Assembly: GCA_003693705.1 (NCBI GenBank)
Contig: RBZT01000816.1
Coordinates: forward strand, 1 to 50,127
Source: Polymyxa betae A26-41
Taxonomy: Eukaryota > Protista > Endomyxa: Phytomyxea
Length of the DNA stretch: 50,127 nt
Direction of reading: 5' to 3'
Positions 19,152-25,211 of the stretch are shown piece by piece. Under the pieces are notes generated by a model, which worked only from the letters and a program-made list of their open reading frames with translations, was not told the origin of the DNA and did not search any database. The position numbers and the translations under genes are program-made. Position 1 is the stretch's first letter; each line of letters opens with the position of its first letter.

Positions 19152-21796
19152 ATGATCGTCGACGATGCTCGCTATTCTGGCCCATCCGCATCGCTCTATA
19201 CGCTGAGCGACGCCTCGACCGAGTTGCCAACCCCGACGCTCTATCAGCTGGCTTTGAATTCGCCCCGTCTCACCAATACATTGCTGGTCGCCATCGCCAT
19301 CTGTGGCGTCACGGCCGGCGTGATCGTCAGTGTCGTACTGGTCGAGGCGGGATCCCGGTCTCAAGAAGAATCCGACCAGGTCCTATGTGACATCCGTGGT
19401 CGCCAGCTGGCCAGGACGGTTAACGATTCTGCCTCGTTACTGTATGCGGTCGCCATGACGCTGCAAGATACAAACGATACGGCGGCGTTTCGCTGGGCGC
19501 TCAATATCTCATTGGCGGCCGGGTTTCCGACCGCAGCTGTTACAGCCTCGGTCCGAAACGGGATCGACGGCTCTGTTACGTATCCGTTATTGGCGTCGGC
19601 GAACAACAACGACCGGATCGGTGTCGATCTACGTCTGGGCGCGAACAGCACCAGCGCTGCACTCCTATCTATCAATGGTGAGCACTCGCCCATACAATCT
19701 CGACCCATGACGAAATGTGACTATAACGTTAGGACAGGTACGGAGACAGTCCGCGCCTGTATAGCGATCACGGTCGTCGCACGAGGAGCCAAATGCATCA
19801 TCGTCGCTCCGATCTGCGTCCGCGATGCCGTGGGCCAGTACGCCGCCGCCGACGTGCCCGGCGCCGATATCGTCACGGTCGCCGACGATGGTGGCAGAAT
19901 CCTGGCGGACGCGGGCCCAGCGTCGTTCGCAGCGCGAACGTCGACGTCGGTGTCTGTGCTGGACCGGACCTGGGTCGTGCACTGCACAGCGCCGACGCCG
20001 GAAGCCTCCGCGCTTCCAGTACCGCTTCATGTACTAGTTGGCGCCCTGGTGGCCGGTGCCGTACTGGCCCTGGACATGATGCTGGGCGTGCACTTTTCGC
20101 AAATGCGGACGACGAACGACTGCTGGAATAAGAAGGCGGTGGAGCTGCGGCAACAGAACCAGGAGATGACGATGGCCGAAGGTCACCGCATCCTGTTCGT
20201 TGAGCTGCTCTGTCGGCGCCTGCAGACCATGTCCAAGGCCATCGAACAGCTGACGTCGTTCTCATTGCAGCCGGCTGCCGGTGAACGACTGAGCCGAGAT
20301 CAACGATCCAGTCTGAAACTCATGGAGCAGCATGTCAATCTCATCAACTCGATCTGCGATCAGTTCTGTAACGTTGAATCGGGTTTACGTTTCCATTATC
20401 TGTTTACGTTTCCATTATCGTTTTATTTTTCCATTATCGTTTTACGTTTCCGTTATCGGGTTTACGTTTCTATTGTCGTTTTACGTTTCCGTCTCCATTT
20501 AAGTCAAGTGACTGCTGTTTACGCGCATCTGTTTCGGGGTCAATCAGCTCCCAGTTAACGTCAACACCGAGTGCTTCGTTACTGATGATAATGTTACAGA
20601 GTGCTGGACTTAACCAATATCGACGGTGGTCGATTCCGACTCGATCATAAGCCCTTCTCGATGCGTGCCATCTTCGACCGTTTGGAGAAACGAATGCGCC
20701 CTATTGCTGAATCGAAAGGGCTTCGGTTCGTGGTTGCCGCTGATACCACCCTCCCAACGACAGCGATTGGTGATGAACGACGTATTGATCAGATCTTGTT
20801 CAATGCTGTATCAAATGCGATCAAGTTCACCGAGAACGGTGGCGTCACGGTCACCGCAAGATCCATCAGTAACAGAATCGATCACGATACCAGCACACAG
20901 TATATCACCATTGAGTTTGCGGTTACAGATACAGGTAACGTGACTTTCCTGAAACCCTAAAACCCTAACCACAGTTCAATTCCAGGCCTGGGGTTTTCGT
21001 CCACGACGATCGATACGTTGATGAACGTCAGCGACGATTTCATGGCAACTGGTGAGGTCGGTCTCGGGTTCATCACCATGAAGAAGCTCTGCGCCCTGAT
21101 GGGCGGTAACGTGACCATCGAATCGGACGCCGGCACATCGTCCCGGGTCCGCCTCCGATTCGTGGTCGTGTACGGTCGCGCCTGTCTCGATTTCGAACTG
21201 GCTCTGCCGACGTCGGGAAAGACGTCGCCTCGCTCCACAATCACGACGGCGTCCGGAAAGGCCGCCATCGAAATCCTGCTCGCTGAGGATAACATGACCA
21301 GCGCCAAGATCGCCCAGCGCATGCTGGAGAACGTAAACAGTGTCGGTGTAACGTTAGTCCAGGACGGGGTCGACGCTCTCGCGGCTGTTGGTATTCCGGA
21401 CCCAAGCACGAAGGTCGCCGAGTTCGCTCTCATTCTCATGGATATCAGTCTTCCCAAACTGGTAACGTTACATTTTACGTTTCTGTGGAACGTTGACAAT
21501 CGGTGCAGGATGGTAACGAAGCGGCTCGTCGTATCCGTGCCGCTGGAATGACGTTACCAGTCATTGGTATGACGGCGTCATCACTACCACATCAACATCG
21601 CGAAAGCTTAAGAGCTGGAATGGACGATATTCTATTAAAACCATTCTCAAGACAACAACTGTTACAGATGATTCGATCCTATGGTAGGATCATCATAGAA
21701 GATGATACTCTTACTAGTCCTGGAGATCAATCAACAAGAACACAACCTGCTCTATGTCCTACGCCGCAGAAGATTCCTCTCCATCTCAGCTTCTAA
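19152..21796 (+). CDS. Membrane hybrid histidine-kinase-like receptor 1: TM-CHASE-TM-HisKA(His lost)-HATPase-REC (4 exons)
   Basis: Two TM helices flank a CHASE-like segment. GDERRIDQILFNAVSNAIKFT (N box), VTDTGLG (G1), GLGF..MKKLCALMGG (G2), ILLAEDN..LILMDISLP.LDG..MTA..KPF (REC). Introns 20363-20599, 20935-20985, 21462-21508. Confidence 0.9.
20383..20491. repeat. Intronic minisatellite, ~6 x 19 bp (GTTTACGTTTCCATTATCG)
   Basis: Imperfect tandem copies inside intron 1 of receptor 1. Confidence 0.75.
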
Positions 21797-22340: not shown

Positions 22341-25211
22341 ATGATCGTCGGTTCAACGGAGTCCGTGACGGACCCGACCACGACTCGATTCGGACGTCCG
22401 GAATCCCTACTGCACAAGCTGGTGATGTCCAAGAGATTGAGAGCGGTCGTACTGGTTTGTGTGAGCATGCTTGGAGTCGGACTTGGGATCGCTATCGGTG
22501 TAGCGCTCCGTTCTGCGGACAAGCACACATCACAGACAGTATGTGATCTTCGTGCACTGGTGATCAGTAACGCAGTTAACGATATGTTGGCCTATCTGAA
22601 TGCGATCGGATCCGGTATTGAAGGCGATCTTACAACCGACTACCTGACTGGTGATGCATCCCGTAGCACTAGGATTAATGTTACACATGCACAGCCTTCC
22701 TATCACAGGTGACTGTTCTCCGATCACAGACTTTTTCAATTGTTAGATGTATCCGAGTAGGGTTTAGGGTTTCGCTCTAGCAGTAATGTAAACATGGCTG
22801 GCGTAGGCCTGGATATTGGACTGATCTGGAGATGCCAAGAGGATTAAAGTCCGTGGTTATGACCGTGGCGATCCGGAATGTCACGCGCTTTCACGCACTC
22901 TATCCACATATCCGAATGATCACTTCGCAAACCGCGGACTCCGCAATTTATTACCCCATCATATGCTCGACGAGCTCGAAGCATCAGCTCGGACTTGACC
23001 TGAATCTGCCCGCACTCCGGGACCGTGTCCATTTCACTGGTAACGTACCATCTCCCGTTACACGCCCGGCAATCGCCGTCCAGGATCATCACCTGATCCG
23101 CTCCGTGGTCGTACAGAGCCACGGATTCATTCTGGTCGGAGAACTATCCCTGGACGACGTACTGGCCCTCACGGATATCACGGTCCGCAGCAACCACAGT
23201 CGCGTGCTGTTCTCGCACATGTCGACGTCGAGGACAGCGTTGGCGGCCAGCACGACCGTATCGATCGCCGGTCGTCCGTGGCCAGCTGTCTGCTGGGCTT
23301 CGGCCAGTGACTCGGTCGTACCGGAGCTGCTGGGCGCCGTCTTGGTCGTGTTGACGTGCGTCCTGGTAGGGCTTCTGTCGTTGAATCTGAATCAGGCGCG
23401 GACTGCGCTCTACAGAGCCCGGAGTACGCCTTCTTTCAATCCGGGACTGCACTGTTCGGAAAACTTTCGTTTCTTCACTTTAGCATCGTCCTTTTGAGAT
23501 CAAAAGTTTCGGCATTTTTGGTAAATTGCATTTTTTTCAATTTAACGTTTTATGTTTCCTAATTTTTATGATTTTTTTTTCTTAAAAAATTAGACGGCTG
23601 AGATGATATTCAGGCAGCACCGAATTGCAAGGACATACTGGCTCATTGGCGGAGTTCCTGTGCCAAAGGTTTCTGGAGCCTGCGTGCGAGGCCGAGGCCA
23701 ATATCCGTACGGTGCTGGACCATGATGAGAAATGGCCCCAGCTGGCTCTTGATCAGAGACACGCACTGATTAACTCCGAGCATCAAGTCCGCATTCTACG
23801 CTCGATGTGCACGCAGTATGTCCTGATCCATGCTCGTGTGTCACGGACTCCGAAACTATTTCACCCAGGATTGTGGATCTGTGCGAGCTGGAATCCGGCG
23901 CCGCAACTCTGGACTTGAAACCGTTCGATGCTGTCGATCTGTTCCGGACTGTCGAGCGAGATTTCGCTTCCCGAGCCGAAGCTCGCGGTGTCCGTCTGTC
24001 CGTTCAATTGCCGCCGTGCTTACCTCGGTTCCTTATTGGAGATCGGCATCGTCTCGAACAGATCCTGTTCGATGCTCTCTCCAACTCCGTCACTGTAACA
24101 CCGCCAGGCGGCATCATCCACGTTGATGTCCGCGTGTCGGCCGTACTGGACCTGCGATCCGTCCAGCAACGTGTACAGCTGTCGGTTACAGTCACGGATT
24201 CAGGTATCTTATTTACTGTCATCACTGTTTTCGAGGTGCCGAATCTTGAAAACCCTAAGCCCTAACCATTCTCCGTTTACTTCGATTCCCGAGTGCGGCC
24301 AACGACTGACACGGTTTTGTGGGTCTTAGGTCCCGCCGTACCGGACCACATTGTTGCGGAGATGGGAGATCCGTGTACGAGCCTGGTCTGTAGTCCGAAG
24401 TATGGCGGGCTCGGCCTCCTGACCATCAAGAAGCTCAGCGCTCTCATGAACGGCACCATTAAATTAAAGACCAGGCCCAATCGTCTCACAATCACCCTTC
24501 AATTTCGATATGAACGCCGACGGACAGAGCCCGGGGGCAGTACGCCATCCGCCAGAATTTCGGCGGCATCATCAACATCAGCAGCTCCGCGGACCCCGTC
24601 CGGCATCCTGCTCGTGGTGGGCTCCGATCTCGAGTCGGCTTCGTTACTCCGTGCGGCTGTCGGGGACGCCCGCGGCTGGCAACTGCAAATGATCCGTGAC
24701 GGAGATGACGTCATGCGGGCCCTGGACGTACCGGCCCCGGGGCGGCCCGAGACCCGGGTCGCACTTATCGTCATTGACCTATCTGGCACTCTCGTTACGG
24801 TTTGACATTTTTTTCCATTTTTTTTGTGGCTTTCAGCTGGAAAGTTTTGCTTTCATCAAAAGCTGAAATCGTTCGTTGCAGAATGGAGCCGAATTGATTG
24901 GACGGATTCGTCAGGCGGGTTTCAGAGTACCGATCGTGACGCTGTCGGTGGCTACAGGCGATAAAGGCGTCTTGATATCGGCAGGATCGGACGCTGTATT
25001 ATGGAAGCCATTGTCTCGTAATCAGATACAGAGTCTAATCGAGTCCATGAACGTGGACGCCCCTGGCCACCGACCCCAACCTGCGACAGTTCGTGCTGCA
25101 TCCCGGACTTCGAGGGCGTTCGGGAGTCGTTTCATGCCGCAACTGGACTCGTTCGATATCATTTCCAAATCCGCAAAACTTGTCTCGAAATCTTCCAGTA
25201 TTGGGTCGTAA
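22341..25211 (+). CDS. Membrane hybrid histidine-kinase-like receptor 2 (paralogue of receptor 1), more degenerate; 5' splicing unresolved
   Basis: Same domain order. GDRHRLEQILFDALSNS, VTDSG, GGLGLLTIKKLSALMNG, REC-like LIVID...KPL. Three introns fall at positions equivalent to those of receptor 1. Confidence 0.82.

Follow-up and report, generated by a model that had tools for sequence, protein, structure and literature searches.

Can a eukaryotic receptor of the cytokinin-receptor type still have a role once its kinase has lost the phospho-acceptor histidine? This question is raised by two adjacent genes on the forward strand of contig RBZT01000816.1 of Polymyxa betae A26-41, an obligate endoparasite of roots that is described as infecting without symptoms (PMC6328671). 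Gene 1 (19152-21796, 749 amino acids [aa]) and gene 2 (22341-25211, 773 aa) lie within the 50,127 nucleotides (nt) that were analysed (here, the window) and were read in an initial annotation, made from the sequence alone, as a tandem pair of CHASE hybrid kinases without the acceptor His. The order of domains claimed there was confirmed: both proteins run transmembrane helix (TM), ectodomain, TM, helical hairpin, HATPase, receiver, according to Pfam matches of single exons (HATPase_c and Response_reg), a kinase-core profile built from 77 bacterial hybrid kinases, and hydropathy. All the motifs that the annotation quoted were found in their places. Splicing, intact frames and remote similarity to CHASE sensors support the view that these are pseudo-kinase receptors of CHASE descent and no simple pseudogenes.

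Both receptors are expressed in P. betae. The transcript evidence consists of contigs from three independent studies (runs X3, X7, and X11), which are taken to be RNA because they are spliced. Ten GT..AG intervals in the region are skipped in these contigs, and a DNA run reads through the intron at 20935-20985. The nine GT-AG introns of the two genes are spliced in the three studies, one X7 contig spans the complete gene 1 mRNA, and the joined exons contain no internal stop in either gene. The joined proteins were used solely for frame and numbering, and searches with the spliced models took each exon separately. The two transcripts appear to be separate and close, with gene 1 seen to about 22068 and gene 2 from about 22117. 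The layout of gene 1 in the initial annotation missed a further sensor intron (19678-19737), which is hidden in the genomic open reading frame (ORF) because its 60 nt are in frame and stop-free. This intron is skipped as 60 nt in X7 and as 55 nt in X3, with GT..AG borders in both. The X3 acceptor, 5 nt upstream, shifts the frame and brings a stop near codon 186, which suggests a product made of TM1 and half a sensor, or a target for decay. The gene 1 sensor queries described below (homologue, Atlas and PDB searches, hhalign, blind alignment, and model) were made with the genomic ORF, including 20 intron-coded residues.

The absence of the H-box His, reported in the initial annotation, holds in the spliced mRNA. 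Pfam HisKA matches neither receptor, and the core profile scores nothing for either DHp. In 70 bacterial relatives, the His and the LDxS motif are 48 to 51 residues apart, and neither receptor has a His at that distance. In gene 1, where the DHp is encoded by exon 2 (19738-20362, aa 176 to 383), the best ungapped register (score 10.1; next 4.3) places Arg335 (20214) well at the His position, with Phe at −6, Leu at +2, and Thr339 (20226) at +4. The DHp helix of gene 2 (exon 3, 23614-23815) is too degraded to be placed alone, and Gln346 (23664) was put at the inferred His position by paralogy, that is, by alignment to gene 1, with Pro at +5 and Leu-Asp at +17/18. Two His residues of gene 2, His365 and His385, were rejected as acceptors, being 34 and 14 residues from LDxS versus the usual 48 to 51. 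A Gly-His pair (His325 and His336; window 20184 and 23634) is kept in both receptors at a site, 11 and 10 residues ahead of the H-box position, that is not His in bacterial kinases. Its reading as the His of an HWE/HisKA_2 kinase was rejected on two grounds: the ATP domain belongs to the HisKA hybrid type, and the His-Arg is missing from gene 2. As judged by the tests run, neither receptor is an active member of the HisKA kinase family.

The two genes are, by sequence comparison, old tandem paralogues. Their exons are 26 to 33% identical, three introns agree between them in codon and phase, and each gene is the only match of the other in the P. betae assembly (27,085,814 bases, 1,001 contigs). 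They also group together in a tree of ATP domains (97/75), and this ATP-core tree names no bacterial donor. Because a motif, E-x-L-C-x-R, is common to the two DHp regions of paralogues that are 28 to 33% identical, the alignment indicates that the acceptor His was lost before the tandem duplication.

Receptor 1 had been credited with intact N and G boxes and a full receiver. This proved correct, with the addition that the F box/lid and the first half of G2 are altered. Its ATP-binding domain (exon 3, 20600-20934) scores 115 bits against the core profile and keeps both N-box Asn residues (Asn452 and Asn456) and the Asp-x-Gly of G1 (Asp494). Exon 4 (20986-21461) carries the altered lid, the GLG of G2, which is kept, and the N-terminal half of the receiver with Glu596-Asp597 and the phospho-acceptor Asp648 (21441). 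Exon 5 (21509-21796) completes the receiver with its Thr and Lys698, contains the stop, and is followed by a 3′ untranslated region (UTR) seen to about 22040-22068. In the DHp of this receptor the acid at H+1 is gone together with the His, and the Thr at H+4 is kept. For receptor 2, the loss of the receiver acidic pair had been recognized, but the description was incomplete, since the ATP site is partly lost as well. Its ATP-binding domain (exon 4, 23869-24203) scores 63 bits, the first N-box Asn is replaced by Asp, and AxKF is lost. Exon 5 (24330-24799) has lost the second Gly of G1, keeps the GLG of G2, and enters the receiver with Gly605-Ser606 in place of the acidic pair and with Asp657 (24776) kept. 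Exon 6 (24882-25211) encodes Lys706, a Ser-rich tail, and the stop. Both receivers also score against the core profile.

Each protein exposes an ectodomain of about 200 to 230 residues between two hydrophobic helices. In gene 1, exon 1 (19152-19677, aa 1 to 175) encodes a short cytosolic N terminus, TM1 (about aa 40 to 68), a stalk helix with Cys79 (19386), the Tyr-Pro motif, and the invariant CHASE Asp159 (19626), and exon 2 encodes the remaining sensor with Cys258 (19983) and TM2 (about aa 266 to 294). In gene 2, exon 1 (22341-22708, aa 1 to 122), preceded by a 5′ UTR seen from about 22117, encodes TM1 (about aa 32 to 57) and the stalk helix with Cys68 (22542), and exon 2 (22807-23423, aa 123 to 328) encodes the sensor core with Asp187 (22997), Thr208 (23060), and Cys285 (23291), followed by TM2 (about aa 291 to 320).

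CHASE ancestry of both sensors is supported below standard thresholds. Neither sensor matches Pfam CHASE (PF03924) over the curated cut-off, and PDB sequence searches with both gave nothing credible and no direct match to AHK4, so the Pfam check that had been proposed was negative; remote methods nevertheless favored CHASE. Among Atlas language-model features, CHASE clusters ranked first for the gene 1 sensor (0.96, 188 shared features), and exon 2 of gene 2 alone retrieved only generic Cache. With the TM helices excluded, exon 2 of genes 1 and 2 reached Z scores of 4.2 and 4.7 against the CHASE profile, above all 40 shuffles, versus 0 against dCache_1; the exon 1 pieces alone were not significant against the CHASE profile. 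The hhalign values were 25 to 50% for CHASE versus under 6% for other Cache families. In a blind alignment, the invariant Gly-x-Asp column of CHASE is occupied by Asp159 and Asp187, and the motif order Tyr-Pro, Gly-x-Asp, Gly-Arg-x-Trp is that of the family. A fold of the sensor from single sequence reached a pLDDT of 37, and a model of sensor 1 guided by the CHASE alignment reached 71, with the distal pocket under 50. The superposition on the AHK4 sensor that had been proposed gave a Z of 11.7 over 202 residues, tied with Tlp1 (12.1) within the range of 10 to 12 obtained for dCache sensors, although the guided model makes this comparison partly circular. Only two ectodomain Cys are common to the paralogues (79/258 and 68/285). 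They fall in the stalk and last strand, where the AHK4 disulfide sits (PMC3491891), as the initial annotation had noted, and may pair; none of 89 bacterial sensors has this pair.

Searches for homologues of the sensor and DHp parts returned none in 5.8 billion proteins, within a limiting length window, and none in JGI metagenomes, where one match (L021) was rejected as the antisense of a polyketide synthase. The sole match among 1.84 billion representatives (P0001) was spurious and was rejected as a cadherin/LRR repeat protein. An exact look-up of these parts also gave no match.

The closest known systems include the plant receptors AHK2/3/4 (AHK4 sensor, PDB 3T4J), which share the TM-CHASE-TM-kinase core-receiver order, the Cys of stalk and last strand, and the equivalent of Asp255; AHK4 is, moreover, itself a known receiver-based drain on HPts. 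The Polymyxa receptors differ from these in having no phospho-His, a single receiver, a shorter sensor, a residue other than Asp at the Asp262 position, and no sequence match. Bacterial CHASE hybrid kinases, among them Xanthomonas PcrK (PDB 6K62), have the order Tyr-Pro-Ile, Gly-x-Asp, Gly-Arg-x-Trp, and bacterial hybrid kinases are 32 to 43% identical to the Polymyxa receptors in the kinase core, whereas bacteria lack the Cys pair and the Polymyxa receptors, whose sensors are below Pfam detection and have a deletion of the CHASE insert that precedes the last distal strand, have lost the His and are interrupted by introns. Elsewhere among eukaryotes, two-pass CHASE hybrids occur outside plants in early-diverging fungi, in Dictyostelium (DhkA), in diatoms, and in brown algae, and the family is thus known from these groups, from plants, and from bacteria; in the surveys, such proteins were collected as HisKA-bearing ones, which by Pfam the Polymyxa receptors are not, and two transmembrane kinases of Plasmodiophora brassicae are termed AHK1-like (PMC5285503, PMC6324907). 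No CHASE kinase is reported for Rhizaria in the surveys (PMC6324907). We found no paper on these two genes or on the combination of a CHASE sensor with a His-less kinase in the literature searched, whose coverage was incomplete.

The search of the genome for HPt partners, suggested in the initial annotation, revealed one. All counts of relay components are lower bounds. A single HPt with the His motif was detected, in an intron-split gene (contig C401, L020:3000-3335), together with one lone canonical receiver (contig C818, L019:4503-4976) and three kinases whose H box contains the His. Contig C941 encodes two of these kinases (L016:4710-6621 and L017:4175-5482), a pair of paralogous two-pass membrane proteins that have helical ectodomains and, next to the intact His, Asp at H+1. 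One is a hybrid, the other has no receiver, a RING-finger gene stands between them, and the pair adjoins a dynein heavy chain gene. The third kinase (contig C613, L018:3910-6208) is a multi-pass membrane hybrid with a canonical H box and is the likely source of phosphate for the HPt.

In AHK4, Asp973 of the receiver mediates the dephosphorylation of HPts, and this phosphatase activity of the kinase is independent of its His (PMC6963811). In HisKA domains, the acid at H+1 serves kinase activity and the Thr or Asn at H+4 phosphatase activity (PMC3510030). Since the AHK4 receiver dephosphorylates HPts and receptor 1 has kept the H+4 Thr and lost the H+1 acid, we favor, tentatively and short of an even chance, the explanation that receptor 1 drains phosphate from the relay under the control of a signal, and that receptor 2 is a partner that either modulates it or is decaying. 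In this history, the ancestor, a CHASE hybrid histidine kinase, would have lost its acceptor His and then duplicated in tandem. Receptor 1 would be a two-pass membrane receptor unable to autophosphorylate, with its complete receiver, H+4 Thr, and nucleotide site conserved. It would take phosphate from the single HPt onto Asp648 and hydrolyze it, thereby draining a relay fed by the three His-intact kinases and ending on the lone receiver, and a small molecule bound in its dCache-fold ectodomain would gate the drain. Having a full receiver but no His, receptor 1 would depend on such a relay for any phosphate that it accepts. Receptor 2, with catalytic marks lost in all three intracellular modules, would at most act as a co-receptor, tuning receptor 1 through dimerization. 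The phosphatase or sink proposed in the initial annotation is plausible for receptor 1, in line with the HPt in the genome; receptor 2 is degraded throughout. We infer reverse phosphotransfer, ligand gating, and the heterodimer, as we do every catalytic step; the receptors most likely work like the reverse mode of AHK4, and the His-less pair would more likely serve to drain a phosphate relay, or to tune it, than to switch it on.

Several points weigh against this explanation. Cytokinin left the phosphatase activity of AHK4 unchanged (PMC6963811), so that ligand gating has no direct precedent, and Caulobacter DivL has neither kinase nor phosphatase activity (PMC4211667). Thr339 may have been kept incidentally, since the DHp scores nothing against the HisKA profile. 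No orthologue in which conservation could be tested was found in the protein, representative, or JGI metagenome searches. The drain also leaves unexplained why conservation of the ATP exon in receptor 1 matches that of active kinases (branch length of 0.67 versus a median of 0.71).

Further His-less pseudo-histidine kinases are RcsD and the subfamily II ethylene receptors, neither of which is known to have a CHASE sensor. DivL sets the precedent for the rival that we take most seriously, albeit as an unlikely one: both receptors would be purely allosteric pseudokinases that move no phosphate, in which a bound ligand or nucleotide shifts the conformation, and with it the control of a partner kinase or the binding of a phosphorylated receiver. 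Like them, DivL is a kinase scaffold without the acceptor His that acts beside active kinases, and it differs in having PAS sensors, Tyr for His, no receiver, and no CHASE (PMC4211667). The missing His and H+1 acid in both receptors, the highly degenerate DHp, and the altered lid are consistent with this reading, which fits receptor 2 best; in receptor 1, however, all five catalytic receiver residues are kept, and a structural role would not need them.

It is also unlikely that gene 1 works alone, gene 2 being a still transcribed pseudogene that is young or in decay. Variants in X7 and X11 number 4 synonymous and 13 nonsynonymous in gene 2, 9 of the latter before TM2, with a nonsynonymous-to-synonymous polymorphism ratio (pN/pS) of about 1.2, as under neutrality; in gene 1 they number 4 and 3, with a pN/pS of 0.26 and the sensor barely covered in X11. 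The ATP-exon branch of receptor 2 (2.7) is four times that of receptor 1. The contrast between the two genes is not significant (P = 0.17; small counts, low-depth contigs), and diversification of a sensor would look alike. Against decay, the 773 codons and five introns of gene 2 are intact after about 70% divergence, no variant of either gene is a stop or an indel, and both Cys, both TMs, and the receiver Asp and Lys are kept. By these counts gene 2 appears to be relaxed or diversifying.

Degenerate plant ethylene receptors are reported to phosphorylate Ser/Thr. Receptor 1 could, in a reading that we consider distinctly improbable, still be a kinase on a noncanonical acceptor, be it the free HPt (as CheA does with its HPt-like domain), a partner His, the upstream Gly-His, or Ser/Thr. 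The intact N box, G1 Asp, and G2 GLG, the ordinary length of the ATP-exon branch, and the conservation of His325/His336 in both paralogues would agree with such an activity, but not the altered lid and first half of G2, and the upstream His is about three turns off the canonical site.

Whatever the output, the ligand of the ectodomains might be cytokinin from the host or some other N6-substituted adenine, as the initial annotation had proposed; we hold this to be improbable as well. The Asp named there as the adenine contact is the wrong residue. The SLDM Asp of AHK4 is Asp255, to which the G[VL]DL Asp of both receptors is equivalent, whereas the adenine-binding Asp262 lies seven residues later (numbering by Tyr250, Thr278, Phe281, Arg282, Leu284, and Thr294). 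The Asp262 position is Ser in gene 1 and Arg in gene 2, which has an Asp at +8; in bacterial CHASE domains it is mostly Arg (75/81). Xanthomonas PcrK, which is described as a cytokinin sensor, also lacks an Asp262 equivalent. Besides CHASE ancestry and the plant-like Cys pair, what speaks for adenine binding is an ungapped alignment by eye of gene 2 to Thr278-Leu289 of AHK4, in which Thr, Pro, and His-His-Leu are kept and Thr208, a candidate equivalent of the wol site, stands opposite Thr278; with no significant match, this likeness is a lead. Phe281 and Arg282 are lost in the same alignment, the Thr294 position is Val in gene 2 and of uncertain register in gene 1, and the pocket, whose strands are not clearly kept, is shortened. 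A CHASE domain does not imply cytokinin sensing, because that of DhkA senses a peptide (PMC6324907), and the suggestion that the pair would matter most in a gall-forming parasite falls away because P. betae infections are symptomless (PMC6328671). By the tests run, neither receptor is a member of the cytokinin receptor family. The complete proposal, in which a heterodimer of His-less plant-like CHASE receptors reads an adenine-type signal of the host, for example cytokinin, and alters HPt phosphorylation without autophosphorylation, by a ligand-gated drain or by direct HPt phosphorylation, is no less improbable.

That both genes are dead pseudogenes or bacterial contamination, as the failure to find a homologue and a third-codon-position G+C content of 0.62 to 0.64, above most neighbors, might suggest, is very improbable and largely refuted by introns spliced in three studies, intact frames, and eukaryotic neighbors.

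Telomere-like AAACCCTAA/TTAGGGTTT motifs occur in introns of both genes (20952, 22764, and 24250) and in seven other places of the window, and intron 2 of gene 1 is filled with short degenerate T-rich repeats (20383-20495). The neighbors at 28177-29715 (− strand), 17312-18486, 14946-15212 (− strand), and 44551-45096 are of ordinary types. An ELP3-like acetyltransferase and a chromodomain protein are among the ordinary neighbors, as are what we take, by resemblance, to be a SYF2-like splicing factor and a TTLL-like ligase. A signal-peptide protein at 2548-3345 (− strand) has a weak alginate-lyase match (E value of 4e-4).

Host sensing by plasmodiophorids is poorly understood, and P. betae is the carrier of the rhizomania virus. 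The two genes are candidate surface or endoplasmic reticulum receptors that standard Pfam annotation missed, as neither a CHASE nor a HisKA domain is recognized by it. Because the relay is small, with three kinases, one HPt, and one lone receiver detected, and could be rebuilt in vitro, the role of a His-less hybrid receptor would be directly testable in this organism.

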